Origin: Haplodiscus bocki
Taxonomy: Eukaryota
Length of the DNA: 64,000 bases
Assembly (NCBI GenBank): GCA_965655095.1
Contig: OZ296651.1
Span: 30,752,001-30,816,000 of the forward strand
Direction of reading: 5' to 3'
Position numbers and translations under genes: made by a program. Under the pieces are notes generated by a model. It saw nothing but the letters and a program-made list of their open reading frames with translations. It was not told where the DNA came from and did not search any database. Shown here piece after piece: positions 10,786 through 36,919 of this stretch. Every line of letters begins with the position of its first letter. Within the stretch, counting starts at the first letter, position 1.

Positions 10786-10956
10786 GTGAATTAATTTCTT
10801 TTAAAAGCTCGGGAATAGTTGACACTATGTAAATTCTTAAATTCTTTTTTAGTCGCTCTATTTCTAAAACTCTAGTTCTTAAGATCCCTCTAGTGCATCA
10901 AAGAGCCGAGCCAGTCAGTGTAAAGCTTTGAAAATATTCACCTGACATGGTTTTAG

Positions 10957-11522
10957 ATTTCCGTCCCCAGAGGCAACCGATTCCTGCAGATAAGAATCTT
11001 TGCTGGAATTCTGAAAATGACAGTGGAATTGGCTCGGGAAGCAGCAATCCATCGGATTCTTCCACTGGTGATGAAGATGCAGCCTCCAAAGACATGAATC
11101 AAATCAGGAGCTGTACTCTAAGCAACGTTTTTTCACCCAATTCTCGAAAGTTAACCCGTAACATCAGTTGTCCCTCAATAATCTCTCGACCCATCACTCT
11201 ATCAGTTTTGCCTTTGGAAGCAACGTGGTGTAATGATACACTAGGCCCAGATTCACCTGTCTATCTTCGCTCAGATCCGAGCAATGAGTCTGATTGGGAA
11301 TCTGATACTGAGAGTGAGGACGTGGAGACACATTATCCCTCCCGAACAACCAAGTCTAAAGTGAAAGCAGCCGCTAATGCTAAGCTGTCTGATGACGCAT
11401 CTGCAACCGAATGGGACACTGGTCTTCTCAAGAATTGTTTCTGCTCATCCAAAACAATCCTCAAATGCAGTTTTTGCGTTGAGCTCAGAAAAACAAATTC
11501 CCATTCTACACATGAAAGAACA
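10957..11522 (+). CDS. PPP1R15: PPP1R15-like gene, coding exon 2
   Basis: PEST-like acidic segments (DSGIGSGSS, ESDWESDTESED). Ends ...HERT at a canonical phase-0 GTAAGT donor (11523). Confidence 0.7.
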
Positions 11523-13668
11523 GTAAGTTGTCTATCCTGGTTTTTGTATGCAATCTTTTATACGTTAGTGTTACTTTTTTTGACACAAGCGCTGAAATGC
11601 TTTCAGCTATTTTTACCAACAATTTCGGAACTTCAGGTGTCTCGTTTTGTTGCTAGTCTTCTTGCATCAGACCGGTTTGTGCTATTGTTCTCAGGTAGTC
11701 ATTTCGGCACTTTGCGTGACCTGAAGAGTTATTACTTTCACAAGTTAAATTACTGTTGAATTACTATAAATTAATGGTTGTAGGGAGAATCGAGGCGTGC
11801 AAACTATCTCAGAGCCACCATTCAAGTTCTAAGTGATAGTGTGGTCCAGTCAGTATATTTCGTTCATTCGCAATCAGTGTCAATGTTAAATAGAATTTAG
11901 TTTGTTGCTTTTCCAGGGCTGCCTTCGATTTCTTGAAGATTTACGAACTATTTAACATGAGCGATACCTAAAGAATATCAATTTATACGTAACAAATAAA
12001 TACAAATATTTCAAGCTAAGTCCGAGAATGGGCTCAAATTACGGGACGTTTTAAAATACCACTATAAGTAAAGCTTCAGAGCATTATTAAGTTGATCACT
12101 GTTTCAGGTCTGAAATGGTCACGTGAGTACTGTTAAAGTATTCTGAAATTCAATGCCTAGGAAATCAATTGTAAATATTCAAGTTGATTAATTTGCTCAA
12201 GCACTTTTGAAAATGTCTTCTGATGGAATGCAATTCCGTGTGTTTGCGGTACATGAGTAACGTTAGGCTTATGTATGAAAGACGACTGCGGTCGTCGTTT
12301 ATGGTAACTTTGTGGATTCGTTTGATGTTAATGCCATGTTGGCTATGATCAACTGTAATGGAAAGCATACGGATAAATCCATTGCAACAGGTTTCTAATG
12401 CATGATAATTTTGCATGGCACCACAGGGATTAGAAAGGAGTTTTGACTTGAAAAATGGAGTATGGAAGGTCGTGGATTTCCCTTCAAGATAGTTGGTATC
12501 TGGGACCGGAGAGTGTGCTTTTTACTCTTTCTAAATGAAAAAAAGAAAGTGTATTGGAAACTGGCTCATGCATAGTTTTATCCTGTCCAAAATTTGCATT
12601 TTGGGACGTCATCGGAGAGTCTAATTTAAACGGTCAAAAAGGGCCTTTTTTTTCAAACACCTTGGCTGGTGCTTGTTGATTTTCGCCTACTGAAAAGTGC
12701 AAAATTTTTGAATTTGAGTCTGACAATTGAACAACAGCGTTCTAAAGATAATGTTTCACATAAAAATGTTTTGAATGAGACAATGTGGGTAAGGTATTGG
12801 GTGTCTTTATTTAAAGAGTTATACTAAAAAATTGTGTTTATCAAAACTCAAAGTGCTTAATATGAGTAAACAAGGCATCGGAATGTCTTTCAAGTGGGAA
12901 CATACCGCTCGTCAATCATAAAAATGGCACTGAATTCGATCTCAAATTGTGAAAATTTTGGTTCAGATTATGAAAGTTGTTTACACTTATTTGACCGAAA
13001 TGAGACAACTTTCTGTTTGTTGTTTTAATTAGGGGTCACAAATAAGTCTTCATGATTCGCTAGTGAGATCAAAGTTTTTGAAGCGGTTTTGTTAACTAGT
13101 GTTACCGATTTTCAGAGCTATAAATTGTTCAGGCAATTTTTTTTGGGATACCTAGTTTTGTTCATTTTTGCGTTGTTCACTGTCTGAATTTTTCAGAAAT
13201 TGGGCTACAAAATTGCGATTCTTGGAAGACATGACTGAGCGATTAAATTTTGACTATTAGACACTGACAGTATCTAGTATGAATTGCACTTTTTGGGGCA
13301 AATTTTTGACAGGCAGATGGTGCAGTATTTCTACAAGTATCAATCCTTGATGTATCTGATCATGGTTCAAATATCTCAGGAGCTTTAGTTTCAGCTTTAT
13401 TTTTGACTTCAACTGACAAGTCAGAATGAGTTGCGAAGTTCCGGTTCACCTCTGTGTCAGATGTTTTTCGGTCCAGAGGCCGTAAAATTTATCCTGATTG
13501 TTTTTTGGCATCATTCTTATTGGTAGACGAAGAGTTACTGCTCGTTTTGGAGGAGAATCTCGTAATTTTCGGGTGTTCTTGCTGTTTTCACAGTAACCCT
13601 AACTCAGTGTTTTTTATTGCGGGCTTATGCCAAGGCATTTTTTGGCTCAGTTTCAGCTGATCTTTTAA

Positions 13669-14638
13669 TGTTATGCCCATCTCTGCCTTTACACAACCCT
13701 AAAATAAACCAAAATTGATGATTTTGAATCTACGTCTTCGCCCAGAATCGCTCCTAATGAACATCTTGGCAGTAATTCTAGTACCAAAGGCTTTCAATTC
13801 TTCAGGAAGTTTTCTGGGGAAAATCCATTGGGCGACCGAATAGTTAGCACTCCGTTGCGTTCTCATTTTTCTCGAAGTCCCTGGTCGGTTTCGGTGCAAA
13901 GAGTCCTGAGCAGAAACATTAGGTGTCGAAAAAGGTTCAGTTGCCCTTGACAATGCGTGTCGGTACCCTTTGTTCGCTCGCTACCAACAGCAAGAACGCG
14001 AGAAGATCGAAGAAAAGCAGATCGAATACAGTTAGATCTTCAAGTAAGTCAAGATATCTTACAAGAATCACTGAACCGTCTCCAACAGAAGAGAGAAACG
14101 TCTATTGTTGTGCCCGGAGCTCGGCCACAACGAAGGAAAAGCGAAAATTTCCTGGAAATTCCAAGAGTGATTTCTGCTCCAAAAACTGATTTCTGCAGTT
14201 TTTGTTGGACTTTTAACCATTTTTGCTTTGGAGGCCAGGACTGCGACACTACACCGCCAATTTTTGCCCATTTCCCAATTTTTGCCACCCCGAGAGCAGT
14301 TGGTAGTCTTAATTGGGCCCAGGAGAAGCCGCCGCTCACCCCCTAGGACGCCAAAACCATCAAAAGTAAGCTGTGTTGGGGCGTTTTTTGAAGAATCTGA
14401 TACCAGAGAGCTTAGTGCTCCAACTTTGAACAGTAGCAGCACCCGCTTTTGGATTGATCAGAGATCGGCTGCACAACCTGTGACGATTTACCAAATTGGG
14501 GGTATTTGGTCTTTTCGGCAAACAGAAATAGCTAAAAAACCACGAAAAAACCCCTTTTTGGAGATACCCGCAAAGGCAAGGTTTTCCGGATCCGAAATTA
14601 TGATCAGGGCCGAAAGTGTCTATCTGATCGTGGATTCA
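13669..14638 (+). repeat. Candidate 5' LTR of Gypsy-2
   Basis: Starts TGTTATG and ends TTCA, followed after 4 nt by PBS-like TGGTGACCC (14643). Only weak patchy similarity to 34500-34800. Confidence 0.4.
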
Positions 14639-15599
14639 AAATTGGTGACCCACCGTTGGCTCTTTTGCCACTTTTTGAGTCGATCGGTGAAAATTTGAAT
14701 TTTTTTCTTGAGTTTTCAGGAATTTAGCGTCATCCCAGAAAAAAGATGGAGAAGTCAAGAAAGCCGAAATTTTTCTCAAACTGTCGCTAGGCCTACAGTA
14801 ATCTGGGACAACGATCACATCTCTTTTCTTGGGTGAAGTAGAGGAGATTATCTGAAATTCCGAAAATTGAAAAGACGAAGTTGACGGGAATTCAATTTTT
14901 TCACAACCCCTGGTGTCCAAAAACGTGAGTTCCAAAGATGCCGATGTGGTAAATCTGGCGAAACCTCCAGGTAAACCAACAACTTTTGATAGCCGTTGTG
15001 TGCAAGAAAATCATTCAACGGACGTAGAAGAGAGGTAAGAGTGGCCTAGAACAACAGAGCAAGAAATTGGTTGGCGACCAGACGATTGGACGACCAGAGG
15101 CAAAAAAGGAGGAACATTATGACTTCATCCTCCTTGAAAATAGTCCGGGAATCGCCTTCAACACCCGCCACTAGATGATAATTTCATGTCAACAGGTGGA
15201 GTTGGACACGACAATCTGGACTTGCGCCGCCCTGGTAAAGCAGTTTGAACATGAGTAGTGAAATAGTCGCCTTTAGACGTAAGGACCACAAAGACCTTGC
15301 GAAATTCTTTTCGTTGTCCTGTCGAATCTTAGGATAACTTTGGCAAAGCTAGTAACTGTTGTTCCCAGGATGAGGACAGGCAGCTTGGGCGCTTGAATAG
15401 CCTCGACCAAGAGCTGGATAGAAAAATGCACCCTTTTCCCAAAGTGAGACAGGATAGGATAATCAAAAACAACAGCTGGTGGAAATCAGCCGTCATTTTG
15501 ATAGCAAAACTTGCAATATTAAGCGGACTCGATTTGCCGAATGTGAGGCCCTCAGAATCCAATGAAGCATAGACAATATGCAAGACGTTGTGACTATCT

Positions 15600-18500
15600 T
15601 GGAATCGACTGTAACTTTTGGAAAGTTCTTCCTTTCAAATACAGCAAAAAATGATCCAAGTGCTAGAGCGCGTCAAATGTTTTCAAGGAAACCAGCAGAA
15701 GGAACAGCGTCCAGTATCCACTGCAGGGTGTCAAGTAAGGATGGCTTTTGAAAGAATCAGAGTTTTGGCGCCATTACATAAGTTGAGTCAACCTTGTCTA
15801 CTCGAAGTTCTAAAATTTAAATGCGACCAAAATGTATGCCACCGCCACTGAAGGAGGGAGATAAGCACAGGTCTCCGTGACATCAGAAGGAACCGGAAAC
15901 TTGACCACCGATGTCTCATTTTTTTCTTGGGTACCAGACAGATGAAGTTGATTGGCGACCGTAGAAAAAACGTGGGAACTCAATTTGACATCTGATCAGG
16001 ATATGCGCCAAGTCTCAGAGCCTGCTGGAGCGTGCACGCACGCGATTGGCACCAACGTCACTAAATTGATGGTTGACAAGCTTTCAAAAACGATTTCCAA
16101 AAGCCTTCATGCTCTTGTGCAAAGGACCGACGTGATGTGGAGAGCCACAAATTTCAAGGAAAACGACAGTAGAAATGTCGAAGGATGTATCACTGTCATT
16201 AAGTTTATAACCAAAGCTTCTCAATCACCAGTGGAGGATCCTTATAAGGTGTGGCTAGTAATCAACTTCTTGAAAGGTGAAACGATAGGCTTCGTTTTCT
16301 ACAAAGCTCTGTCCAAGATTGGGGAACCGGAGCAAAACTTCCAGTTACTGTTACGAAGATTTGGACTGGGTGCTCAAGAGAGCCCAATTCAGGGGCTCCT
16401 TTGCCAACTGATAGCATAAGCTAAGAGAATCCAATATGCAGTAGTTTGATGAAATAGAAGGGTTGACGAGCGAGCGAAACGCGAAGGATTTTTCTGAAAT
16501 TCGTTGTTATGAAATCAAGCAAAACTTCATGGCGAGGCTAATGAACCGAGGCCTACCTCGGAGCCTTGCCTCGCAGAACGCAGAGGAAGGCTACGTAGAA
16601 TAACCTCCCACTGTAGGAGAATTGAGATATTTGGCCTAAGACAGGATGGGAATGGGAGAACAATACCATCAAGGGGCAGAGCCAAGACCCATACCCTACA
16701 ATCCGAACCAATTGACACTAGCAGCCCCTAGCCCCGCAGTACCAGTAGCAATTCCCCAGCCAACCTTGGAGCCACCCAAGTCTGTAGACAACATAGTTCG
16801 ATATCTGATCCGGGGGATGTCCCATGTCATGTTCCAATTGTTTCCAATTTAGACCCTATGCAATGGTTGTGAACTACCGCGAAGGTACGGCAACTTAACG
16901 CAACCTGTCATCATCGTGTCCAACCGAACCGAAATGAAACCACCCGAACGATGAACTTGAAGAATCCTTCAACTGTGAACCTCTTCTGTTCCAGATGTGG
17001 AGAAAGGCAACATTTGGATTCTAGTTGCACCGACAGTGCTAAGGATTATGCAGAGGCTACCTGAGCATGGTATCAAAATCAACTGGACCAAATCAGGCTT
17101 CGATCAAATGCAGAATCCCAACAAAATTATTAAATATTTTCCGTGATTAATCACAAAGTTCCAATGCAAAATTGCGCGATTTCCCGACGAGTTCAATTGT
17201 AGATAGATCCATCCACAAAAAGAGCGAGCTACCTTTACCTTGGACTTGTAACTATCCCATGTGCGCCAATTTGAACCCCGTTTCACCCGTCAGGAGCTGG
17301 CATGCAGTTTGAATTTACGTACTCAGCGAATCATATCGGGAGGAAAAGTTAAACCACCATGGAAAGTCGCTGGACCTTTGCTAGCGTGGTTATGCATCGT
17401 GAAAGAGACCTCAAAACGGAAGCTATGCTAGTGCAAGGTTATTTCAATGAAAAAAAGTTTTTGGCAAGTCGGAGGTTGTTACTTGAATTCGCGGGAGACC
17501 ACATTGATCAGAATGCAACATTTGTTTTGATTTTTTCAGTGCGACAACGGTCAGTGAATTTGTGTAGAATAATCGATGCTGTGGCTGGAGCCTCAGTAAT
17601 GACAATCTAAGCTCGGCTGAAAATAGCTTCGATTGACCAACGCAGCTTGTTACCCCAACATATCAATCGTTTAAAAGAAAACAGACTGGGCATTCACACC
17701 TTGGGAGTAGCGGAATGAGTGTTCTTCATGCAAGCAGGATTCATGTTGCAAGCTAGCTTTGTTGTGGTTGATGACTCTCTATCTAATAACTTCATTCTGG
17801 GAAAATCATTCCTGAGACAATACGACGTGTAGGTAGATTTGAAGTCAAAGAAACCCGTCATCGGTGATCCCCATCAAGATACTTGACAGCAGCTTTCATG
17901 AGGTATGTATTGGAGTGCCGACGTATCCCCTTAGAGTCACGGAAAAAAATTCAAACAATGGGAATCCAAAATAAAAAGAAAGTTGAAGATGAGGGGTCAT
18001 TCAGATTGGTTAAATGTATTTGAACTGGTCTCTGTCATCAAGAGTGAACCCCTTCCTCAATTGTTTTTCCTTTTAGCTGACACTGTAAAGATCGTGCAGC
18101 AGAAACAATCCATTTTCTGCTTCATGAGAAATGATACCCGTGAACCGAATGTTCGACAAGTTGATAATATCATTGGAGAAATTTTTGGAACGCAGCAAAG
18201 TGACTCAAAATTGAAATTTGAACCAAATTGTGAACGTGAATGAAAACAGACATGATGTGAAAGTGATTAATAGTGTTTCAATTAATTTATTATCTGAAAG
18301 TGAGTTCCTGTTCAGCTCTGAGTTGCTCCTAAATGATAATAGTGTTTATGAAGTGGACAAAACTGGATCGAGCGTTATCGGAGGCCATCCCAGCTCCGAT
18401 ATTACACCGGTAGGAAATGCTTGGGGATTTAAAGAAACAGGAGTGGATAATCTGGATGAAATATGAAGACAACTCCATGAGACATATAGGCGATCCAGGT

Positions 18501-19088
18501 AGATGTACTTTGTTGGAACACATAATAGAACTAAATCCTAATGCCAATCTGCTTCGAGAGGGAGCTAGACGAATTTCTCGTGATAAGGCAGAGAAACCCA
18601 ACCGAGAAATTTGCTCTTGTTGGCCATAGGCAAGATTGAACCATCTTACTCGCCCTGCGAAAGTGGAGTGATCATGGTAAAGAAATGCGCTTCTGTTTTG
18701 ACTTCTGACAACTTACTGATGTTACTGTCAAGACGTCTATATCTCTTGCCTTGGATCGACGGAAGTTCTGCCTATTGGGCAAAACTAAATATTTCACCAC
18801 CTCAGATCTAACCTCAGCTTTCTGTCCAGTTGCTTTGAAGACAAAATATCGACCAAAAACTGGTTTTGTGTGCAAGCTAGGCTTTCTGGAGTGGAAGAGA
18901 ATGCCCGTCGGCCTTTGCAATACAACTGCCTTCTTCCAGGGATCAATGAACTAACTTTATCATCAGCAGAAGAGCAAACTGGCAGCATGATTATCTGCTA
19001 CATTGATGATTTCATCCTTGCTATTGAAACGGTTGAGGAGCATTTCGTTCGATTGAGAGATGTTTTCGATTGTGTCAGAGACATAGGA
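15600..19088 (+). pseudogene. Gypsy-2 gag-protease-RT (5' part)
   Basis: CSRCGERQHLDSSC (CX2CX4HX4C, ~16987), IIDAVAGASVM protease relic, KYFTTSDLTSAF...EWKRMPVGLCN and CYIDDF (YIDD at 18999-19010). Confidence 0.85.
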
Positions 19089-19771
19089 CCTAGCGCTGGA
19101 GGCTAAGGTCAAAATAGGGCCGTTGTCTGAGAGTAGTCGGCTTTGAGTATTGACGATGCTGATTTTATAGTACACGAACATTCATAATTTACGTCCTATG
19201 TACAATCCTCAGTTCAATAATTCGAGCCAAGGTTTGAAGGACTTTTTTTCCATATATGCGCTATATTTTCCAAAAGGTGAGCACAACGACAAGAGCAGGA
19301 TCCTATATCAGGATTAGACCCTCGGCAAAAGTTAATCGGAGAATATTAAGACGTACTAAAGAAATGTTGGAAAAAACGATTTGAAGAGTAACACATTAAG
19401 TGTCAGAAGTGGCAACTGAGGGGTAGCCATGTATACATTAAGTTGCAAATAGAGTAGTAATCGGGAAAACAATTGCAATTCACATGCAGCACACGGGAGA
19501 AAAGGTTCATTTTAACGATCGTTTAAGAAATTTTTATTCAACAATGAGATTGACGAAACTGAAAATTATGAAAATGGGTTCTAAAAGCAATAATAAAAGC
19601 CCTGGAACAGAATTAAAAGAGTTCTAACAGTAGGGAAAACATTAAACTAGTGTTATTCTTTTCAGTTGTGCCACATTTCAGTGGGCTCATCCGATAAGAC
19701 AAAATCTGTCACTTTAGATATAGTAGACAGATGAAGATCAGATTAAATGTAAGTTACATCACTGGTCGATT

Positions 19772-20791
19772 CTATGGGTGAGGTGGCCTGGGGTTTTTCA
19801 AACTCTGCATTCTTGTTGTTAGGTCACAGTTGGGTTGTAGAGACACAATGTGGAACTCGTGCACTTCTTGAAAGGAGTCTCCTTCTGTTTTCGATGGCTT
19901 GAACCACCCAATAACCTTGAAGGCCTCGAACAAAAGCTTTCTAGTCTCTTCCGGTTCAAGAGTGTGCCTATTAATTTCCTTCACCAATTCGCCCAAACAC
20001 TTCTGAAAATTGAGGTTATTGAAGGTGTTTGGATCGTTCGGACGCAAATGTTCATGATTGTTTCTGACTAGTTTTGCGAACGAGACGGAGATAAAAGAAG
20101 ATTTCTGATGGTTTGTGCGATCAAGCTGAAGTTCGTCGCACTTAACATGGGTCCTGACACCCCAAGTACCGTAGCCGTCTTTCTCCACACAAGCGCAATG
20201 AGTTTTTTTGGCCACTTTCCGTCACAGAATGCCCCCTTACATAGGTCCAATGTTGGCATGACGAATTTTAGCTCGACGCTCGTCGACTTGAAATGAAAGA
20301 AACGGATGTCATTTTCACTTTCGATATGGAAGGGTGGCAGTTCTCGGAAGGAAATATCTTTAATATTTCCAACAGGCACTAGTGGTTCTGCAGTCGCAAT
20401 CAGGACCTTGTCCCTTTATCCTTGGTTAAAGAACAGCTACCACACATCCGGGAGTGATTTTGGTGTTGTAACGCGTAATCACACGACTCTCTTTCTCTTC
20501 ACTCCTGAAAAGGGCGACTACTTTGTTAGAAGTTGGGTGGCAAAATAGAAAAAATCCGTCGTAGCTAGACTGCTGCATTTTCATCTTTGCCGGTTTTTGT
20601 CCACCACTTGAAAACGTTGTCTTGAACTTTAGGGGCTCAGTGGATCGTTCACCATGCAAATACACCAGATGTAACTTCTGAAGTTCAGAATCAGCACCAG
20701 AAAGTAAATCTGGCAACAGCTTTAATTCATATTCAGCAATATGGGTTCGTTCTGCCTCCACGCTCAACGATGTAGGTAGTGAAGAGTTCAT
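19772..20791 (-). pseudogene. Helitron accessory ORF, Cys-cluster protein, possibly OB-fold/RPA-like (frameshifted)
   Basis: ORFs 20426-20815, 20068-20379 and 19772-20215 join into one ~340-codon frame with CKGAFCD...HCAC and a beta-rich end FKVIGWFKP...FHIVSLQP. The function is inferred only. Confidence 0.45.
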
Positions 20792-22099
20792 TTCAGAGAA
20801 GCTGAAAAGTGTCAACTAATGAAACAGGCACGCAAAAAGGCACTCCGGACTGCTTTCAGAACGAGGGGGAAGTTATTGACTGTGCTCTTTTTGGTAGCAA
20901 TTGTGAAGTGTTTTCAATACAAATATGTCGAAAAAAAACTTTTCAGACTAGGTTAGTGCATTCACTCCAGGCTTCAATTTATGTCGATATTACCTGGCCA
21001 AGTAGTGGAAAAAGTAATATCGTCAATTTCGTCACAAAGTTAATGTACTTTTTAACACAGTGTCTCTTGAACAGAGGGGTTAATTTGGTTGATGTGAATG
21101 GGCACATAAAAGTTTTTCAACTGAGTCGCAACACTTACCGTGGGAAGCCCATTGACAGTATCAGCAGTATGCGTGATTACTTCGCGGGAAAAAATCCGAG
21201 AAATCTATGAAGTCAATTCTGGTGGCACTTTCAGTCAATTATGAACGTTTTCTTTCGGATGTAATTTACGCTGATGGAGAAGAGCTGGTATTGTGTATAG
21301 GATTGTTTTCGCAGAATATTTGAAACTCAAATCAATGTAATTCAAAACTGTATGAAGAGCATTACAGGCAAAACATAGCCTCAGCGACATTTTGACAACG
21401 TTCAAAGTTCCTAAGGAAACCGAAATTTAAAGGCATAGCAAACTTTAAAAATTTCGGGATAGCTTAAGCTCCTCAGTTAAATGTACATCAACGAAGTTTT
21501 GAAAGGATGAAGCAGAAAATATCATTTCACTCTCAGGAGGAAAAATAGAAACTAAGTCTGTTTCATCAGAAATCAGTTGGGGAACAATACTAACTTGAAA
21601 CTGCGTGAAAAAGCCCGCGCTCAGCTTTATCAGGCAGCGCCCGGGCAACCGGCATATGAAGGATGTGACTTGTAAGTTATGATGAAGTTGTATTGACAAG
21701 TTCAGAAGAACACACTGTTGTCACGGGATTTCGAGCTTCAACTATTATAATAAGAGACTTCGTTTAAACACAATCAACGGAACATTATTTTACCAATTTA
21801 GTGGCAATTTAGCAAATTTTACAAAAGCATCAAATTTGTAGGGGTCCGAATTCACTGATGAACGAGAGCTTAATGACTTCAACGAATTAGGGACAAGCTT
21901 TTTCATTGGAAAAGAAAATTGAGTTCCCAGGTACCCACTTTCTTGCAACTTTACCCACAGTTGCTAGTCGAGTAAAGGGGGAAAAATTTATTTTTTGCAT
22001 CATTGGGAAAAAATGTTCGCGTATCAACTTGGTCACTTTTCTGGTAGTGGAGCAAAAAAGGTAGCACTTAACTTGAACCTTATTTTCCTCCATGGTACT

Positions 22100-25000: not shown

Positions 25001-28000
25001 TTGAAGCAACTTCGATTTTCAAGAGGCAAGGTATTCACGTGAACACAAGTTTACGCCGGAAAGACATATTTCAAGTCCAACATGCTCCAAATACATTCAG
25101 TTGACGACAAAATGCGGCAAACTTCAGAAGTTGAAGTGTTTTTTTTCTTTTTCAGCTGCAATTTTCGCTCCCGCAATTTTTATCTTTCTTTTTCTTAACG
25201 CTAACTGGGACAGACGCACTAGACTCACCATGAATCTTTACTGTAGCGTGTTCTTCCACGCCAGCTGCGTTTTTCGCTAAATATGTAGCAGACATTATGG
25301 CGTCACAAACAATTCATGCTACCTTGATTTAACGAGTAAGTTTTTGTCACAACCGGAGAGAATGTTTCACCGAAGTCCGCTGCGTAATAATAGTAACCCG
25401 CCTTCAACTCTTGCGCTACTTCACAATGACCTTCCAACAGATGAGCTAAATGCAAATTCCGTAAAATTTCCCACACATCCTCACAATATGGTCTGCTAAT
25501 CAACTTGAAAAATGTTTCAGATCACGACTCGTACACTTTGAACCTACAAATTTTCTGGCCACTGTTATCACATTTTTTGCGACATCTGTAGTTCCCGCGC
25601 TCGCACGAGTGCGTTAATGTTTCCGCTAAACTGTGCAAATCGTCGACATTCTCCTCTGAGTTTAACAATGTATTTGTGGGGTCAGCCAATTCGATTTTCA
25701 GTTCATGCAACAGTTGGCGAAAAGATCCGACAATTTTGTTTTTGATAATGGGATTGTTCTTGTCCTCGTATGTCCAAATACTTACATGAAGGTGAGGAGC
25801 ATTGCCTATTGATGTTTGAAATTCAAAACGCGGAAAAATGATTTTGACAGTTCCCAGAGGTTTATCTTTGGATATTTCCAAATACTTAATGAAAAAAGCA
25901 GCCGCCCTTCCCCACAAATGCACATATAAAGGCATGAATCCCTCTTTCAGGTTCCTTCTCTCAGCATCACTCATATTAACACTATTCCGCTCGATTAGTT
26001 TAAACAACGGTGCCTTGCCGAACATTCTGGACTGGTTTAACGTAAACGTCAGAAAAAAGGTTGGCTCCTCCGACCGTATAGCCGAAGCCAATTCATTTAC
26101 GATTTTACGACTGTCTTCTTCATTCATCCGTTCAATGGCCTGAGAACTTTTGAAATTCAAAGACCGGAGTTCCTGTGAACCTCTGTTCAGAACAAAGCGA
26201 GAATCAAAATTTTGAGCTTGGAAGTTGAGGAAACAGTCAAAAATAAAACTGAATAACGCGCGGGTCCGAAGATTTCAATAACGACAAATTTTTCAAGCGA
26301 CTACGAATGTGAGAAATTATGTCAGCAAAAATGAAGCGCTTCGTCACTGACGCTGGCGCGAATAAGGGTGACGGAATCGCGCTACAAATGGAATTTTTGA
26401 CAGTGAGGTAAGAAATGGAAGGTAAAAGCACTGCCTCGGGTAACGTTAACGGAACACTTTCGCCGGGACATTTGGCAGTGAAAGATGTGAGGAAACGCCA
26501 TTCATTTTTCCTGAAGTTTGTCGGGTTTCTTGGCCTATTAAGTAAGGAACATACTGCATTCAAAATGACGTGACTTCCCACTGTTTTAAGGTCTTCTGCT
26601 GAATGAATCTGTACTGCTTCGGCGCCAGCATCCGTTTCGGAAACGTCGACAATTTCAATTACCCCGGCGTCCGTGGGAACATCAGTTTCACTAGTGGAAG
26701 CTTCAACTTCACTGTCATCTCCCCCGGAATTGTCACCTATTTCATCGCTTTGCCTTTTCTGTCTCAGGACCTCATTTTTCCCTACATGTGGTGTAACAGT
26801 ACTTTTTCCATCTATTTCACTGAAGTGCTTCTTACAAAGGGCACTTTCACACCCCTCAAATGGACATCGCCATGCTGATTGCAGGTACAGAAGTCATCAA
26901 ACTGGCAAAAAAGATTTTTTAGGAAAATCACAAGTTAACCGCAGTGTATGAGCATCACAAAACACCATATCTTGGCCAAAAATACTGAAAACATCCTGCG
27001 ATCTTTCTTTCTCATTTAAACGAGACTCAAGCCTTTCATAAACGCAAATTTTCCAGTTGTTTTTAGGAAGAAAAGAACAATAAAATTGATGAGTAACTTT
27101 TTGAGATTTACCAACAGTATTAATGTTCCACCAATCCTCGCAAACTTTGTAACGAAAGTTTTCGAAGTGGAATCGTCACTTACTATGTACACCAGTTTGA
27201 ATGTCCTATCATTGGTTTCCATACAGTCATTTGGAGGGAGAAGAGAACAATTTCTGGAGCAGCAACGGATCACGCGACAAAGTCGTGCTCGTTAGCAATG
27301 TCTATATTGAGGTCAACAGGTTGTTGCTTATTTTGGACTTCTACACACTTCACATAAGGTAATCGATGAAGCGTCTGGAAAACCGTCGACTCTTCTAAGT
27401 CGCGTTCGTTTTTACGCAATGCGTCATTGAAACTCTGTTTGAACGATTTTCATTTTTTGCCAGAAACATTCACGAATTTTCGATGAGAAACGCTGTTTTC
27501 TTAGATGTCCCTGTATTATGTTACTCATAAAAAGAACCGAATTAGCTGTCAAATCAAAGATAGTTTTTGATTTTTCTGAACCTACTACGTAAGTTGTTGG
27601 TGGGGCCCCCCCAAAGATTTATCCATCACTTTTACACAAGGAAAATGTAGTTTATTTAAAGAGCACACCTCGTTGTTCGATGGCTTACTAAAAGAACCGG
27701 ACTCCTCCTCAGGTTCTTGAAATTGACAATCAGAGTGTTCTGTTGGTTCTTCATCAATGCTGTCATGTAATATCTCATTCTCGGAGCTTGCAACGTCCCC
27801 CTGGACTTCATCAACTTCGTCAATAATAGTCAGAGGCTCAACCGTCTGAAGGTTTCTGACGTAGCGTAAAAAACCAATTGTTTCAAGGGGCAAGAAGCTA
27901 GTGTGATCTTCGAAAACAACAGCTTTCTCAATCCAGTCGAAGTTTTTATTTTTCAAATTAGAATCACCTACGGCCTGAGATAGGTGACCATTATTCACAG

Positions 28001-29341
28001 TTTTTTTAAAACCAATTCATTATCTTTTCTCGTCTGAAGGTAGAATGATTCGTGTAGGACATTTTCATCGCTCACTTTATCAAACGAACGGCTTTCTGAT
28101 AAGAAACAGGTGTTTAAACCGGCGAAACAAGATTGCAGCTTTACCATTTTTTACGACGCAGTCGAGAAGTTTTCGCGAAAAGGTTCCATTGTCCTTGTGC
28201 TCAAAATCGCCGACGCGAAACCATCGGGCAAGGATTGAAATTTCTACCGGCCGGGTGCCTAAGTAAATGCAAGTATTGTTGGTCAATTTTGTTGTTGTGA
28301 TCCCTACAAGTTAACAAAAACACGCCATTGACATTAAATAGAAGTGCTGGCTTTTTTGATGGAGCTAAAGGGTCTTCTGGGAAATTGATTTCCGTTAATT
28401 CGTAGTCACAACGGATTCCTCGTAAATAAACCGTAAATAAATTGAATTGCGAAAATGTTGGAATGATTTTGCCTCAGTAATGTGTAAAATCGATCTGTCC
28501 ACACTCATCAATAAATTCCTCACATACAACGGGGCATTCAACACAGGAAAAAAATTCTTCGTTGACACAGTTCACCATCTTCGCAACAGGCATTTTTTGT
28601 CTGAAAGCGTTGAATTTTCTTAGCCTCTCTGATACATCAGTGAAAACTGGAACACTTACCAAGTCCATCCTACTCCAAAAAACCAAATTTTCACACGCTG
28701 TTTTGTTTAGCCACCTCGACCTCAACGGAAAGGGAATGTTTTGCCAAAAGTTACAAGTGATATCTTCATCGGTAAGCATTATCCAGAAAACTGCTGGCCC
28801 AGCAAATTTCAAAGTGGCAATTTTGTTGTACGGAGGGTTAGATGGGTTCTCAAATGCGCTACACAATTGACAGAGAGTGATAATGCTGGATGTTTTGCTG
28901 GGGCCAAATTTTTTGTCAATTGACAATAGTGGTTCTTGCTACAGTGTCAAACTGTAATGGGAAACTCTCAGTTGAAATACGATGACAACTGTAACAGGTC
29001 CTCTTATTGGGAATAATTAAAGACGCTACTTCTTCGGGGGGCGACAAAATGGAGACTTCGAATACGCCTGGGTCCGAGATGCGATCCTCGTTAGCATCAC
29101 ACCTTGAGCATTAGCCGGTAGCAGACAACAGGCGGTCACATGGTTGACATTTCTCACGACGTGGTCGTTTGCGACCCATGATATCAGCAGAAACTGAAAA
29201 CTCCGCGCATGCATGCCGAACACATAGTTATTGGATTGTCACTGTTGCAAATTTGTAGCCCACTTTTTTAGTTGACCTTCCGGAACCACAGGAGAGAGAT
29301 TAAACTTTAATGTAGTGTTTTTTTAACCGATAAGAGGCCAT
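22100..29341 (-). pseudogene. Rep (HUH)-PIF1 helicase-GIY-YIG polyprotein, frameshifted
   Basis: Rep motifs PTFFLTFTLN, RFEFQTSIGNAPHLHVSIW and YLAKN (YxxKY relic, ~25280). Helicase motifs AMSGSGKT, LYFEEIGMVS, PFGGILIVGTGDPKQLP, QFPLKNFMAMTIHKAMG and LYVLVSRV. C-terminal GFVYLLVS...TYVGQTSDLRRRLREH...RPWG. Confidence 0.88.
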
Positions 29342-29861
29342 TTTCGCAATCGACATTTTGGAAAAAAGCGGCAATTTAGAAGTTTACTTTCAGGATTACT
29401 GACTCAGGTCACTTTTAAAGTGAACCAAAGTTTGTTTTCAGGAAATATAAGGATCTTGTCCCTTCTAAACCAGCTGCTCTCTTACGTGTTCGTTTTCCTG
29501 CTGAGAACAAGTTTTGTTTAAGAGTGCGAAGTACATCATTTAAATTTCCCTGGGAACAATCAGTAAAACTTATCGGCCACTATTAGTAGACCGCACTACG
29601 ATTAAATACTGTTGGTTGAAGATGAAAAGAACAATCGGAATGAGCACAGTCAATTGATGGGGCAACAGGAAATTTGCAATTCATAAAGTAATAACAAAAC
29701 AACATATCAAAAACTCAAAATCTTGACAAAAAATTAATAAGTTAGTTAACTTCGGAAGTTGCTTGGCAGTTGTAACAAACAATTGGGTACAAATGGGAAA
29801 GAAATAATGGAAAATAGCTGCATACAGGCTTCCAAAATGTTGATGACAGATACTTAACCCT

Positions 29862-30454
29862 CTAAAGACGAGCTGAAAATCGAACATTGTTTGTCAAAAT
29901 CCGATCATTCAGCTTTACAGATTGAGGAAACAATGTAGTGTACTCAGGGAAATTTTCGTTAACTATGGATCTCAGTTGGCTCCGTCCAAACTTGCTGAGA
30001 TGTATTTGATCATCCCAAACGATGAACTTTCTGCTCAACTTGGAGCCAACACCCACAAACTTGTACACACCGGTTGCACTAAGCCGAAGAGCATTGTTGA
30101 GTTGTTTTATGGCAAAAATAACTTCGTTGATCGTTCGATGTGGGACTCCCAAAACAAATACATTACCGTAGTATTTCAAGTACTGGCTGGCCGCCAAGAT
30201 GTCAAATGTGATTTTGGGAATTGTTCTCTGCCAACGCATCCGTCCCTGTTTGGTCTACTTTGCAAGCTGTTTCCCCCTATCATCAGAATAAAATGAGAAT
30301 TATTTTGCAAGGGAAAATTGGAAACAATACTAGGCAAATCGTCCACTCTCGCCCCAGGAACACACACAATATCACAATAGTCGATAACCAATTTCCGTAA
30401 AAGAGAATCACCAACCAACACAATTTCGTTTCCGCGTTCAGTTGAGTAAATCAT
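29862..30454 (-). pseudogene. SGNH/GDSL hydrolase-like ORF (frameshifted)
   Basis: Block I IVLVGDSL, block II VPGA, block III LMIGGNSL and block V DDQIHLSKFG (DxxH), spread over ORFs 30176-30460 and 29862-30239. Confidence 0.8.
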
Positions 30455-31940
30455 TTCCAATTGGAAACCATTAGAGTTAAAAAAACATTATTCGGTCTGA
30501 AAAGGGACTCGTTACCTCTGCTTTTTTCCAAATACATGAAACACTCCCGCAAAAACTTGAGCAAAGTACGCTCTAACGACGATTTTAACTCATTGGAACA
30601 ACTTTAGTTGACGTTTCGCACCACTTTCCTTCCAATGATTTGACCGATTAGTAGAGACAAAGTCCAAGATTAGCACGCTTTTAATTGGAATTAAAATCGC
30701 AATTACACGTTGACACGGTTGATACTTACCCACATAAACCTTACCATACAATGTCCAAAGAAAGACGGCTAAAACGATAATTGAATTACTTTAGTACTGC
30801 TAAACATTACAGATTTCATACAAAAAAGCCCTACGGAGGGCACGAAGAAACAAAAGGCAAAGTTGCTCAAAGTTTTGGAAAAACAAATTTCAGTCAAAGC
30901 GCTTTCGTGTGAGATTGGAAACTTGATTAGAACCACTCATGAATACTGAAAGTCGTCAAAGTAAAAAAAAAACGAAATTTAAGAAAATCATTTCCAATGG
31001 AACTGAATGAAAACTGAGCGCATAATCTTTTTGACATACTACTTCTAAAGACTTCAAACATCACATACGCGTTGTAGCTTAACAGGGGAACTGTTTCCTA
31101 CTTCTGCAAGCGTTCCCTAAAGTGCCCCAGAAAAAAGTTATGGCCAGTTGAAACACAAGGACTCTGATGAAAATGTCCGGTGGGTCAAAATTCGTGGCCT
31201 GAAAAACGACAAAAAAATGAATTTTTTTTTGGAAAAACAAAAACTCACCAGCTAACTGCATCAATTGGGCTAAATATTGCAGAAAAGAATGGCCCGATAG
31301 CTATCCTACGAAAAAATTGCCGCCAGAAAGCATTTTATGATCAAAAACTGGAAAAAGTGTGGTTTTTTCCAAAAAAAATGGTCATAACTTTTTCCCACTT
31401 TGTTTTATGGAGTTTTTTCCTGCTAAACATTTGTTCACATATGGATGGGCAACAAGGGGTAATGGCACCGTGAAACCACTTTGATAAGTGGGTGCCGAGT
31501 TACGGGACCTTAAACTTGAAAAACACGTCTCAGACCCATTTTTTGACCTTTTTCAAATTATCATAAGTCAACGTCAGATTGTCGTACAGCAGCGTTCTAC
31601 AGCTCATTTTCCCCGCTGATTGACGTACTTTCCGCATGCAGCCACTTGCAATACTAGTTGTGTGGACGAAGTTGGACTTTGGGCCCAAAAACCGTCAAAA
31701 AATGGAAAATAGGCGAAATTGACGTCACAAAATGGCAAAATATCCAACATTTAGAAAAAATCCGGAAAAATGCCACAAGGGAATGCTGATTAGCTTGCTC
31801 ATACCTAGAAACGTGCAAATTTTCAGCCGATTCTATAGGCTCGTTTCGAAAATCGATTTTTTCCCACCCTTTTTTGTTACGTCTAATTTCCCACAGGGGC
31901 TGCCGCTACCGGGTCCCTCCCCGGGCGGCCTGAGAGGTTA

Positions 31941-33880
31941 GGAAGCATCCCGGACCACGAAAGATCACCGCGGAAAGCATGATGCCTGGAAAAAGACGCC
32001 GTATGGAAGCTACAGGAGTGGCAACGCCTCAGAATAAGGACCGACTGGCACTTTTTTGAGATCTGCCTTTTTCCATCGCCATTTCATCCTAGACTATGCC
32101 GCCATAGTTCATCCCATGGTAATTCTCTTGAAAATGTGTCAACTTGTAATGGTTGAGAGACGCTCAGCGAGCATTTGAGCGGATCATGGGACTTGTCAAA
32201 CCCAGTAGCATTAGCCTTGGCAGCATATGAACGATGTTTCCTGGACGCAGACGCAGGTAATGTTGGATTGTCAGACATTCTTGGTCAAGATCAAGTTTGG
32301 AGTACTAGGAAAGTGATCTTTCTGGTGTATTTTGGCAGCAAGTCTTTGAACCCTACTGAAATGAAGATTGGAACTCAAAATGGGAAAGGTTCGCAGGCGG
32401 TCACGTTTATCTAAAAGCTCACGTCGTATTTAACCCACGGATGCTCATTTCGAGAATCGATAATCAAGCTTCATGCTGGCTAAAGACACTTTCTCGATGA
32501 AGGAATCAGTTGATAGTGGATCGTCCTACTAAACGAATTTGAGATGGAGATTGAAGCTTGATCAATTACGAAGCTCGGGACTGCAGCTGGATAGAACTTA
32601 ACCAGAAGATCAATCACTACATTCGGCGGCAAAGGAAATCGCCCATATAGCGCACAAAAAATTGAACTCCGCTTCATTTTACAAGAAAAAATGACATGCT
32701 ACCTCCGTGCCTGAGTTGGGCAGCAAGAAGCTGGGTCGTTGCATCAAGTCTTAATCAGTGCCTGACTCAGTAAAAGTTCTGCCAACCAAGTCCCCCAAAA
32801 GCTTCATCGAAAAGTGGGTAAAGACAGGAAGTCCAGGAGCTCTGCCCCAAACCGGAGTTCACCATTTTTTGACAATATCCGTGGGAGCAAGAATCAACTG
32901 ACGAATTTTCGACAAAGAAATTTTGCCTTGTTCGAGCACCTGCTCTAGCGAAAGGATTTCAAAACCTTGATGTCATACTTACCAACATTTAGCAAGTTTC
33001 GAACATGCTCAGCTCAACATCACATCATCACAACTGTCCTAAAAAGAACACCATAGCAACGTCTATTCCATAAGCAATTCTCTTGAAGCGCGTCGAGCAG
33101 ACACCTAATCCAAGCGATACATCGACTGATGGCAAACATCTCACTGGAGGACTCAAGAATCAGTCCGGAAATGCATTTTAGACCAGTGTGAACGGAAATT
33201 ATTCGTCAATTTAAGATGACATCCTTTGTACAAGAAAGCCTTTCAAAGAATAGGCCAGATGCCGCTTCCAGCATCTAATAGTGATGTCTCAATTTTTTCA
33301 TTCGGACAAATCGAAAAATCCCTGACACTCGTGCTTGAGGCAGATAAAGGATTGTCAAGTCCTGAATACATCGCGGTGATTGGCCAGCGAAGTCAAGACT
33401 TGTATAGCCGACTGCCCGGCTTGCGAGGAAAAGGGACTTCGTAATGATGCCCTACGTTGAGGAATTAAAAACATCTTTCAGAATTTTCGTTGAATTATTG
33501 CAGATTGACAACCTCATAATTTGCAAAACCAAACCGGCCATACTGGAGTGAAGTGATCATTGAACACTTCACTGAGCCAATGAATACACTGCTGAAGCCA
33601 GAATACATTTTTTAATTCATTGGTGTGCACAAAATGGCGCGCTATGGTTTTTGCAATCTGATGATGGAACCCAGTTTACAGCGGATTTGACTCAAGAATT
33701 CATCTGATTGTCTCATGTAGTTTAAATCTTTCCAGCGCCAGCCACCCACAGAAGCAAGTTCTAGTGGAACGCCAGAATAGAACACTCCTCAGTTTACTCG
33801 CTGTGTACTGCAGTAGACGAATGAAGGAGTTGAATACCAACAGGGCTCAAAGTAGGTGCTGTTATTGAATAACACCGTTC
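31941..33880 (+). pseudogene. Gypsy-2 RT C-terminus, RNase H and integrase (3' part)
   Basis: KHPGPRKITAE (KYLG-like), FLDADAGNVGLSDILGQ...YFGSKSLNPTE (RNase H), and ELLQID, SDDGTQFT, VERQNRTLL (rve integrase). Confidence 0.8.
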
Positions 33881-34895
33881 TGTCAACTATACGGTATCAA
33901 TTGTTCATATCGAAAGTGAACTGGAAACTTAGACAAGGAATCTGTCGGACTGAGTGATGAGATCCAGTTTAAAAGTACATAAAACCACAGTCATGGCCTT
34001 GAAAGAGAAATAAGCATGATGAAAAGTGTCAAGAATGCTTATTCGTAAAAATTCTTGCGCAAGTTGACAAACTCAAACACCTTGGAACAGCGCGTATCTG
34101 AGATGGACGTCATGATGTTAACATCAGAATCCTGGTTGCTCAATCAACGAATGCTTTCAAAGAAACTTTTGCTGACAAGACAGTTTTTCACAATCTGTTA
34201 AAAGGTGTTAACTGACTCTAATCCCAATGGCAACCCATAATGGCGAGAACTGAATCTCTAATCCACAAACGGCTTGATTTCAAAATCAATGTTATGGAAG
34301 CGATTAAATATGCATTGACGACTTGCGAAATGAAAGGAATCCTTACCACGATTCGATTGAATCCTTACCACGTAGCTATGTTCCTTGGACATGTTAATCA
34401 TTAGCAGTGTCTTGAAGACCTGAACTCACCAAAGGAAAATTTGCTTGACAATGGGCACTATAATGCAAAACGTGTCACAATTCCGAAACAAAACTCTGCC
34501 AGATGACGCAAGACTGTTGTAGCCTGCAGTGACTACCAATGCCGAGAACTAGCTTGGCAACTAGAAGAGGAGAACATCCGCCAAAATTCTGATCATACTT
34601 GTAGTAGTCGACTACCAGTTGCTGACTGCGCGCGTCCCATCCACTCGTTGGATTGCTCGTGTTTTTTTTTGGACTGAACGCAATTCGGGACCCCCACTGC
34701 AGCCTTTGATTTTGCGGAAAAAGATTTTTCTGATAGTCGGAAGGTGAAAATATCAACGAATCGAAGTCTTATTAATATCATATTTTGATGAGAATTTACC
34801 GGCAATTTTGTTCCAAGTACGATCAGTGAAGCAAAGAGGAAATTGGTCATGTAAATAATGACAGCACTGGTCCGTGCATGATACATAGTCGTGAG

Positions 34896-35280
34896 TAGCG
34901 CTCGGCGGTTCTGGAAAAAGCTTTGGTTCGCTTCGATTCGGTTCGCAATCGAAAAAATCGGTTCGGTTCCAAGAGTTGGAACAAAAATTATTTATCCTAG
35001 AACTTTTTTCTTTGTAGCAAGCGTCAGCGTACAGCTTTCAGTTTTCCAAAATGAGTTCACTTCAATTTGAAGCACCGTTTTGTTTTTCTACAATGTAAAC
35101 TTACATCATTCTTGAATGGCTTTTGGTAATTTTCACTGGGCAATTACGATTACTATGTAAAAGTTCGGCAAAATCTCTGCTTGACCTATCACAAATTGGA
35201 ATAGTCGATTTTGATTCTGAACGTCGGTTTTGCCCGGTTTTTAATTTTATCGGATCGGTTCGGTTAACCGCCGAACATTA
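34896..35280. mobile_element. hAT-type MITE with 8 bp TSD
   Basis: TIRs TAGCGCTCGGCGGTT / AACCGCCGAACATTA, a perfect 8 bp duplication GTCGTGAG at 34888-34895 and 35281-35288, and subterminal TCGGT repeats. Confidence 0.85.
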
Positions 35281-35747
35281 GTCGTGAGGTACTCATTGAA
35301 GTTGAGCTGAGCTTCTGATAGCGAAGCGGAAGTGAAAAAGCATGGGAGCAACTTTGGAGCACTTTTGCTCTACACAGTTTTTATGTGTTTAATTTCGATG
35401 AAATTTCTTCAATTTTTGGAAACGAAGGGACACAAGTATCGATTAAAACGCTTTTTTGTCCTTTCTATATTTTCATTAGTTTTTCTTAGACTAAGTCTAT
35501 TTTGTATGCAAACGCGATATGGTCAGTTCTGATTTGTTTGTAAATGCCGCATTGTTTTTAAATGAGGGACTGGATTTGCATTAACGTGCTTCCAAAGTTG
35601 AATTTGAATTTTTGGTTAAACGCTGAAGCAAGTTGTTAGTGCTTTTTCAAGAAATATTTTCGCAGTTTCAAATTTGATCTTTTCACTTTTGCTTCGTCGG
35701 TTGCGCTGTCCGGAATCATCATGGCTCTTTATAAGAGGTCCTATTTT

Positions 35748-35915
35748 CAAGGGCGAATTAAGGGAAGGGCGAGGGAGTCCAAGGCACCTTTCCCATTTTT
35801 GAACTTTTTACTGCAAAATACCTGACATCATGGTAAATTTGTGCATTTTCCGTGGCCGCGCCTCCCCTCTATTTTGAGAGCAGCCCCCGTTCACAATTTT
35901 CTAAATAGTCCCCTG
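35748..35915. mobile_element. Small degenerate hAT-type MITE
   Basis: CAAGGGCGAATTA ... TAAATAGTCCCCTG imperfect TIRs. Flanks CCTATTTT / TTTATTTT resemble a decayed 8 bp TSD. Confidence 0.5.
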
Positions 35916-36349
35916 TTTATTTTATGAAGTACCTGATGCTTCTGATATTCAATTTTTTGGCCATCTTTAAAAATGTGTTGAGGAGTAGTTGGCATAATGT
36001 TAGAAGTCGTGAATCACAATCGAAAGGTTGTGTGTCCGATCCATCCTCTATCCTTGTTATGTAACTCGAGTAACTTAGTTTGCTTCAGGCTAGTAGCTAT
36101 TGAAAGTAAGAGTTGTCAATCATCAGTGGCTCAAAAAGAGGCGACGGATCGAGATCAATAGGTCAGCAGAAGCTCATGAAATTGGGATCTATCCGATACG
36201 ACGAGGACAACAAAATGATATGTTTCAGAAGATAAGATATTTGAAAACCAAACCAAGTGATCGTTATTTATTGTTCAGTCACTTATCTGAAGGTATTTTG
36301 GATTGCTTTTCTATAATTTAACCCTTTTAGTTACCTGCTAAATTTTCAG

Positions 36350-36688
36350 GTGTGGTTTCCGGAGTCTAATCGATTGGAAACTACGTATTTGTTGGATGAA
36401 AGCGACGAAGAAAACGACGAACCAGATGAAATTCATATTCTTTACTGTTACCCTCCCTTTTCCTATCAGCAGCAGTCTCTCTATTCGGGCTCCGCCTCTT
36501 CCTTCTCTAATTGTAATTCCTCTCCCACGAAAAGCAGAAGCAGTCGCAAGTCTCCTTGGGAAATGTTTGCAAGGGACAGACTAAGATTCCAACGAAAAAT
36601 CGCTCAGAGATACAAAGATCAGCTATCGGCTATTCTCGACACAGAACATCGTCTCAAAATCTACAATTCGCGTTTTAAAGAAACATAA
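36350..36688 (+). CDS. PPP1R15: PPP1R15-like gene, terminal exon (PP1/eIF2alpha-binding domain)
   Basis: Acceptor AATTTTCAG|GTG TGG TTT (phase 0). RKSPWEMFARDRLRFQRKI...LSAILDTEHR matches the PPP1R15/ICP34.5 signature RxGxWExxARDRxRFxRRI. Splicing gives R-T|V-W-F, an RVxF motif. Confidence 0.88.
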   Translation: MWFPESNRLETTYLLDESDEENDEPDEIHILYCYPPFSYQQQSLYSGSASSFSNCNSSPTKSRSSRKSPWEMFARDRLRFQRKIAQRYKDQLSAILDTEHRLKIYNSRFKET

Positions 36689-36919
36689 TTTTTCCGTAGA
36701 AGGAAAGTTGCCTAAATTTGATTGTAGAGTAAAGAAGTTAAGATTTAGTGTATTTTTATATTATTGTATGTAACCATGTTTCACCACCTCAGAAGGCTCT
36801 TAACTCTCTAAAAGTATTTCGTTCTTAAATTTTTCAAAACATCAACTCCATTAACCCAGACAATTTTTAATTTTACAAAATTCCGAAAAAAAGTGTTGAA
36901 AAAAGTCGAACATCTCCAA

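Follow-up and report, generated by a model that had tools for sequence, protein, structure and literature searches.

Do two stretches of open reading frame that lie 24.8 kb apart in the genome of Haplodiscus bocki encode one protein, with a docking motif assembled across an intron full of transposons? This question is raised by a window (the whole stretch of DNA analysed here, 64,000 nucleotides in length) in which a sequence-only reading had recognized a PPP1R15 gene. PPP1R15 is a regulatory subunit which docks protein phosphatase 1 (PP1) and steers the enzyme to phosphorylated eIF2-alpha. Family scans (PP1c_bdg, PDB) and comparative gene structure support this identity, and the window very probably holds the single PPP1R15 gene of the genome (eIF2-alpha phosphatase targeting subunit, GADD34/CReP family), with three coding exons and a predicted removal of intron 2. 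Its parts are:

9863-10785, forward strand: exon 1 (first coding exon), ending AAG/GTGAAT in phase 1
10786-10956, forward strand: intron 1, 171 nt, GTGAAT...TTTTAG, phase 1, predicted from sequence and frame arithmetic
10957-11522, forward strand: exon 2, acidic and serine-rich, with a conserved block ESDWESDTESED-ETHYPSR and a cysteine-rich end
11523-36349, forward strand: intron 2, 24,827 nt without any N, GTAAGT...TTTTCAG, phase 0, between x and V of [KR]-x-V-x-F
36350-36688, forward strand: exon 3, 112 codons plus stop, with V-W-F at 36350-36358

The coding parts of these exons (9903-10785, 10957-11522 and 36350-36688, forward strand) measure 883, 566 and 339 nt. By sequence and frame arithmetic their sum is divisible by three and gives a model of 595 codons, interrupted in phase 1 after exon 1 and in phase 0 after exon 2. 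At the 5′ end, an acceptor (TTTTTTTCAG, at 9862) lies directly upstream of exon 1, and a start-stop mini-uORF (ATG TGA) is found at 9867-9872 within the exon. The start codon is likely ATG 9903, since the open reading frame of L002, a locus in a related genome, begins at the equivalent residue (53% identity over 301 aa). L002 has an acceptor and a mini-uORF at the matching spot, and the first 60 N-terminal residues are well conserved between the two. Members of the PPP1R15 family carry a membrane-binding amphipathic helix at the N-terminus. The in-frame ATG at 9882, considered as an alternative start, is unconserved. A look-up of exon 1 in the ESM Atlas gave no match.

The claimed splice junction, HERT/GTAAGT joined in phase 0 to TTTTCAG/VWF, was confirmed in the sequence with respect to donor, acceptor and both frames. 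The donor at 11522/11523 reads ...CAT GAA AGA ACA/GTAAGT, a perfect GTAAGT, and the acceptor at 36349/36350 reads AAATTTTCAG/GTG TGG TTT, with TTTTCAG directly preceding V-W-F. The frame of exon 3 is closed upstream by a TAA at 36314-36316, and the only phase-0 AG before V-W-F is that at 36349. Exon 2 closes with ...THERT, and it is from here that R-T of the RVxF motif comes; the junction is flanked by ...GAAAGAACA at the end of exon 2 and GTGTGGTTT at the start of exon 3. Exon 3 is translated as VWFPESNRLETTYLL...SPWEMFARDRLRFQRKI... up to the stop codon. Since intron 2 cuts between R-T and V-W-F, a complete RTVWF exists in the spliced mRNA only. The four sequencing runs containing this stretch, all from one study, are genomic DNA; their contigs of 2.2-3.2 kb cross 34995-37850 unbroken, with no loose end at 36350.

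The identity of the gene is carried mainly by exon 3. By itself it scores 29.9 bits against Pfam PF10488 (PP1c_bdg; gathering cut-off 26.1 bits) over profile positions 187-228, the only part of the profile that is also covered by P0004, a natural full-length relative. In a six-frame scan of the whole 1.5 Gb genome, exon 3 was the sole PP1c_bdg site. PDB entries for PPP1R15B (4V0U, E 4.6e-6), DP71L (9nb9, E 3e-4) and PPP1R15A all match it. The core R-x-x-P-W-E-x-x-A-R-D-R-x-R-F-x-x-K-I lies at 36539-36667, and all eight nearly invariant residues of domain alignment A1 are kept. The vertebrate PPP1R15A (GADD34) and PPP1R15B (CReP) and the single insect dPPP1R15 have the corresponding R-x-x-P-W-E-x-x-A-R-D-R-x-R-F-x-x-[RK]-I in common with the window gene, in which counterparts of R578, W582, F592, R595 and I596 of GADD34 are present. 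Specifically, R66, W70, F80 and I84 of exon 3 align with R578, W582, F592 and I596 of GADD34 and with R658, W662, F672 and I676 of CReP; the Arg enters a pocket of PP1, and Trp, Phe and Ile face actin (PMC10743859). Further likenesses to the family are an RVxF-type motif upstream of the core, an acidic serine-rich middle part and a mini-uORF shortly upstream of the start codon. Compared with L002, dN/dS was 0.17 both over the exons as a whole and in exon 3a, synonymous sites being saturated; this ratio averages over a long divergence, so that a recent loss of function is compatible with it.

The pattern [RK]-x(0,1)-[VI]-{P}-[FW], searched N-terminal to the core, is matched by R-T of exon 2 together with V-W-F of exon 3, as predicted from the separate exons. 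In alignment A1, V-W-F stands opposite V-R-F, V-S-F, V-K-F and V-Q-F of the named orthologs. The x residue is W in the window gene and L002, and R in P0004 and in L003, a locus in a second related genome; a W at this position presumably falls outside the narrower published RVxF consensus. At the Phi-Phi motif, which follows RVxF at a short distance (V564-H565 of GADD34), exon 3 has T-Y-L-L where orthologs have V-Y and V-H; it offers an aromatic residue, but a T where the first hydrophobic one would stand. PPP1R15 proteins dephosphorylate eIF2-alpha-P and bind both PP1 and G-actin; the product of the window gene is predicted to bind PP1. RVxF and the Arg/Trp core lie about 43 residues further apart than in human GADD34. 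In place of the well-conserved W-[SD]-F-A-Y-R-x-A-R-K-G stretch that leads from the docking motif to the P-W-E core in PPP1R15, the window gene, L002, L003 and P0004 have a longer acidic serine-rich linker. The viral PPP1R15 mimics (ASFV DP71L, HSV ICP34.5) share the P-W-E...R-F-Q-R-R-I core with exon 3. Unlike them, the window gene is cellular and intron-bearing, comprises 595 codons and has a long N-terminal half which is conserved in related genomes.

The link between exons 2 and 3, and with it the split of the motif into R-T and V-W-F, is supported by comparative gene structure. Homologous exons flank the identical phase-0 site in L002 (HERT/gtaagt, 321 nt, tttttcag/VWFPES) and L003 (HQRT/gtaaga, 56 nt, ttctag/VRFPST). 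The identity of exon 2 with P0002 is 65% and that with P0003 is 43%; each of these two stops at H-[EQ]-R-T followed by GT. Homology to the two related genomes ends exactly at the donor and restarts exactly at the acceptor, which is more than chance would give. P0004, from a third relative, is an uninterrupted 523-aa open reading frame which reads straight through ...HKRT-VRFPS...; exon 2 of the window matches residues 213-399 of this frame, and exon 3 follows on from 400/402, leaving no gap between them. That exons 1-2 and the open reading frame at 36350 stem from different genes could be suspected from the 24.8 kb between them. However, the pieces are adjacent in two genomes, with order and phase kept, and fused in the reading frame of the third, and this comparison already refutes a chance juxtaposition, barring an assembly error in all three relatives; its probability is close to nil. 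Together with the splice signals, the comparison suggests that the 24.8 kb intron would be removed in H. bocki.

The position of this intron had been proposed to be ancient, on the premise that vertebrate PPP1R15 genes are interrupted at the RVxF motif as well. The latter is in print for hamster Ppp1r15b (PMC5429092, methods note). A search from the Lottia C-terminus returned molluscs, beetles and crustaceans and no vertebrate, and so the vertebrate position rests on PMC5429092. Beyond vertebrates, a phase-0 [KR]x/VxF intron was mapped in the bug Nesidiocoris, the beetle Sitophilus and the fly Anastrepha, and also in the molluscs Lottia and Liolophura. Altogether, the position is shown in eight other species. 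Among the arthropods mapped, the intron is absent in a soldier fly and a shrimp; at least two losses have occurred. The position of intron 2 dates back to the protostome ancestor at least and, given the statement on hamster, probably to the bilaterian one. The split of RVxF is an old family trait which was already in print, and no peculiarity of the window gene.

What sets the window gene apart is length, as the intron at this site measures 24.8 kb compared with tens to hundreds of bases elsewhere; that of Anastrepha has 9.7 kb. At least 57% of intron 2 is multi-copy DNA, with the following elements:

12519-13457, no strand assigned: high-copy repeat of about 940 nt, genome copies 71-75% identical, 4161 first-look candidates
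15952-19087, forward strand: 5′ part of a decayed retroelement, with a CCHC knuckle at 16873-17061 and a frameshifted reverse transcriptase (RT) at 18709-19103
19088-31958, reverse strand (open reading frames): multi-copy element of 12.9 kb inserted in the RT gene, with a Walker-A and an HxH-type Rep-like open reading frame
31959-33865, forward strand: 3′ part of the retroelement, with RNase H at 32157-32411 (weak) and an integrase-like ...HPQKQVLVERQNRTL... at 33665-33865
34889-35287, no strand assigned: MITE, about 390 nt long, whose 18-nt terminal inverted repeats are imperfect and flanked by the direct repeat TAGTCGTGAG

The nested arrangement that had been described stood, in that a retroelement pol is split by the 12.9 kb element; the names given to the two elements fared less well. 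The retroelement shows RT, RNase H and integrase-like parts in this order on the forward strand (RVT_1, E 7e-6 and 7e-3 at profile positions 60-135 and 141-181; RT_RNaseH, weak at E 0.048; integrase-like motif recognized by eye), and its 5′ part is essentially single-copy as DNA. Neither a repeat search nor blastn found a pair of LTRs, so the label "Gypsy" is not established. For the 12.9 kb element, full-length copies with 86-88% identity occur on C1 and C9, and its last 1 kb (30920-31958) is the unit of a tandem array elsewhere; its identification as a Helitron is weak, as the Pfam match to Helitron_like_N reached E 0.19 only, and PIF1 gave no match at E 1. Two MITEs had been claimed, of which a single one shows a target-site duplication along with terminal inverted repeats. 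For this one, over 200 candidates with 71-78% identity were found, and depth spikes coincide with it in genomic reads; the inverted-repeat search found no terminal inverted repeats in the 940-nt repeat.

On the most probable reading, transposon insertions made an ancestral intron of less than 350 bases grow to 24.8 kb. A retroelement inserted into the short intron, the 12.9 kb multi-copy element then entered its RT gene, and smaller repeats were added too. The length of intron 2 is a local accident. As in transposon-driven intron expansion known from large animal genomes, nested insertions account for most of the growth, and nothing is unusual here except that the target intron bisects a short linear docking motif.

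Such an intron might have crippled the gene, with transcripts of exons 1-2 ending at intronic polyadenylation or cryptic splice sites and exon 3 left as a relic. Long transposon-filled introns hold many cryptic signals, and the retroelement lies in sense orientation. Against this, the splice signals are intact, and exon 3 is open with all conserved residues kept, although copies of the inserted element differ by 12-14%. The locus is moreover the only one with PP1c_bdg in the genome, in a family which according to review PMC10743859 is essential in both flies and mice, and Anastrepha tolerates its long intron at the same site; we regard a crippled gene as highly improbable. Quite unlikely, too, is a model that is right but incomplete, in which a transposon-derived cassette exon or alternative last exons yield isoforms without V-x-F and the PP1/actin-binding core. 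Nothing direct speaks for such isoforms, which are conceivable through the size of the intron and its position inside the docking motif; the relatives' introns of 56 and 321 nt are too small for such exons, and P0004 has the direct join. A related idea, which we consider unlikely, is that the intron owes its retention since the bilaterian ancestor to use, beyond mere inheritance. For example, intronic polyadenylation or alternative last exons could give isoforms with the substrate- and membrane-binding half that are unable to dock PP1. If this were true, the 24.8 kb intron would be a natural experiment on a switch that tolerates or exploits transposon-borne signals.

The three-exon PPP1R15 model is correct and of modest interest, the gene being otherwise ordinary. 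Neither the annotation nor the age of the intron changes the understanding of the pathway. The evolutionary addition is small: a phase-0 intron within the docking motif is common to molluscs, insects, the lineage of the window and, according to PMC5429092, a mammal. For annotation the corrected model matters, because gene callers based on open reading frames or short introns would report two unrelated fragments here, and the only eIF2-alpha phosphatase subunit of the genome would escape them.

The coding sequence of PPP1R15, a gene of the GADD34/CReP family, is divided in Haplodiscus bocki by a predicted intron of 24,827 nt without a single N (intron 2, 11523-36349), which interrupts RTVWF, the PP1-docking RVxF motif. 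The sequence-only reading had linked the exon ending in H-E-R-T to the distant V-W-F frame, and donor, acceptor and frame fit this junction. Exon 2 closes at 11522 with CAT GAA AGA ACA (H-E-R-T), followed by GTAAGT, and the acceptor AAATTTTCAG ends at 36349 directly before GTG TGG TTT (V-W-F). This AG is the only one in phase 0 ahead of V-W-F, in a frame of 112 codons which is delimited by an upstream stop (TAA, 36314-36316) and terminates with TAA at 36686-36688. The exons upstream of intron 2 were defined as follows.

Upstream part of the PPP1R15 gene model
9903-10785, + strand: coding exon 1, beginning with ATG at 9903 (from sequence and frame)
between 10785 and 10957, + strand: intron 1, 171 nt, GT..AG
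10957-11522, + strand: exon 2 (from sequence and frame)

Together with exon 3, the exons sum to 1,788 nt, corresponding to 595 codons and a stop, with introns in phase 1 and then phase 0. The only four sequencing runs holding this stretch are genomic, and their contigs cross the acceptor at 36350 unbroken.

Comparative support for joining exon 2 to exon 3 is strong. Two ORFs called on other assemblies are related to exon 2, and each ends in H-[EQ]-R-T followed by GT. The first, on L002 (a 401 kb ENA contig, exon 2 identity 65%), reads CAC GAA CGA ACT, then GTAAGT, 321 nt of intron, and TTTTTCAG before GTC TGG TTT CCA GAG (V-W-F-P-E). The second, on L003 (a 1.6 kb metagenome contig, 43%), reads CAG AGA ACT, then GTAAGA, 56 nt of intron, and TTCTAG before GTG CGG TTT CCG (V-R-F-P). 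The third relative, P0004, is an uninterrupted ORF of 523 aa on a 1.8 kb JGI contig; its 90% cluster includes one member from a run that we take to be a Tara Oceans metatranscriptome. Exon 2 aligns with P0004 residues 213-399 (ending THERT versus THKRT) and exon 3 from residue 400/402 onwards, with no residue missing between the two parts. Exon 1 matches an L002 ORF over its full length (53% identity), and the pairwise dN/dS against L002 is 0.17, synonymous sites being saturated.

All searches for family identity were run with single exons rather than with the joined protein. Exon 3 by itself matches Pfam PP1c_bdg (PF10488) with 29.9 bits (cut-off 26.1, profile positions 187-228), and a six-frame search of the entire 1.5 Gb assembly with this profile returned the exon 3 locus as its sole match; the gene is therefore single-copy. 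Among solved structures, the top match of exon 3 is the PPP1R15B chain of 4V0U, a complex with PP1 and G-actin (E 4.6e-6), with ASFV DP71L and PPP1R15A also among the best. Exon 3 keeps all eight residues that are nearly invariant in the domain alignment, and the core S-R-K-S-P-W-E-M-F-A-R-D-R-L-R-F-Q-R-K-I holds counterparts of GADD34 R578, W582, F592, R595 and I596, whose roles in PP1 and actin contacts have been summarised (PMC10743859).

The spliced mRNA would encode a protein of about 595 residues with a lineage-conserved N-terminal half. Its C-terminal 115 residues comprise RTVWF, then a Y/L pair where a Phi-Phi motif would be expected, and a putative Arg/Trp/Phe/Ile helix. This part most likely docks PP1 and, with G-actin, would direct it to phospho-eIF2-alpha, as judged from family homology. 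Two features set this gene apart from the named orthologs. At its x position the motif has W, as in L002; L003 and P0004 have R there. The stretch W-x-F-A-Y-R-x-A-R-K-G, conserved in all aligned orthologs, is absent from this lineage and replaced by a longer acidic, Ser-rich linker (36380-36545, exon 3 residues 11-65; P0004 405-460). This linker separates the RVxF/Phi-Phi motifs from the P-W-E core and exceeds the corresponding segment of molluscs, insects and GADD34 by 40-45 residues. In L002, the closest relative, the counterpart of exon 3 carries an extra interruption of ~737 nt (11073-11810; S-S-R-R, gttggg...ttag, S-P-W-E-M-F) with usable GT..AG ends in phase 2; it may be an intron of recent origin or inserted DNA whose splice sites are coincidental.

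Upstream of the first coding exon, the acceptor TTTTTTTCAG followed by AAAATG is common to the window (9850-9905) and L002 (7840-7900), and the gene must have a 5' UTR exon upstream of it. A tiny uORF follows this acceptor at once (ATG TGA in the window, ATG TTT TGA in L002), 30-50 nt upstream of the conserved start codon; fly and mammal PPP1R15 mRNAs are known for uORF control (PMC10743859). On the same strand, a B-box zinc finger ORF (351 aa, 8563-9618, Pfam E 2.7e-8) ends 245 nt before this acceptor.

The size of intron 2 has an ordinary cause. At least 14.2 kb of it (57%) is DNA that is multi-copy in this genome.

Multi-copy components of intron 2
12519-13457: high-copy repeat, 940 nt; a first look gives thousands of candidate copies (71-75% identity)
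19088-31958: multi-copy element, 12.9 kb, with full-length copies (86-88% identity) on two other chromosome-scale contigs
34889-35287: MITE, 390 nt, with imperfect 18-nt inverted termini and the flanking direct repeat TAGTCGTGAG

A search for inverted termini in the 940-nt repeat found none. In a decayed retroelement on the + strand, a CCHC knuckle precedes two RT pieces with frameshifts (RVT_1, E 7e-6 and 7e-3) that end at ~19088, and a weak RNase H and an integrase-like stretch of the same retroelement lie 3' of the 12.9 kb element. The nested arrangement proposed earlier is thus correct. The Gypsy label is not established, because the LTRs sought were not found and the retroelement region has a single copy at the DNA level; the Helitron label of the 12.9 kb element is only weakly supported (Helitron_like_N, E 0.19). 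The final kilobase of this element (30920-31958) forms, elsewhere in the genome, head-to-tail arrays with a period of ~1.43 kb, for example at ~92.70 Mb and ~187.14 Mb of another H. bocki contig (C1). The last ~40 nt of intron 2 (36305-36349) resemble the 56-nt intron of L003 (780-823), sharing TTTTAGTTAC and CTAAATT, and the closer relative L002 shows no such similarity. Coincidence in AT-rich DNA could account for the match with L003, as could conservation of a branch-point region.

Exon junctions were mapped in named orthologs for which the locus was also retrieved, and the RVxF-splitting intron is in phase 0 in all five species mapped with it.

Junctions at the RVxF motif
Lottia gigantea (mollusc): K-K / V-R-F, phase 0
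Liolophura sinensis (mollusc, chiton): K-K / V-S-F, phase 0
Nesidiocoris tenuis (bug): K-K / V-K-F, phase 0
Sitophilus oryzae (beetle): K-L / V-Q-F, phase 0
Anastrepha ludens (fly, L011): K-K / V-R-F, phase 0, intron ~9.7 kb at 853-10604

This intron is absent from Hermetia illucens, where the coding sequence is intronless, and from the shrimp Halocaridina rubra, which has a single intron of 159 nt near the N-terminus. For hamster Ppp1r15b, an intron at the RVxF motif was stated by Crespillo-Casado et al. (PMC5429092), and mouse Ppp1r15a is reported to have its PP1-binding domain in exon 3 (PMC7756897). The earlier statement of a vertebrate intron at this site thus proves right. Since the Anastrepha ludens intron occupies the same site, great length there is not peculiar to the window. 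The intron lies at an ancient position, and a split motif is a long-standing trait of the family that the literature already mentions, not a peculiarity of this gene.

The split gene is thus confirmed as an observation and its interpretation is supported, with modest interest. The family is already known; ORF callers would split PPP1R15 here, and the correction of the gene model is sound.
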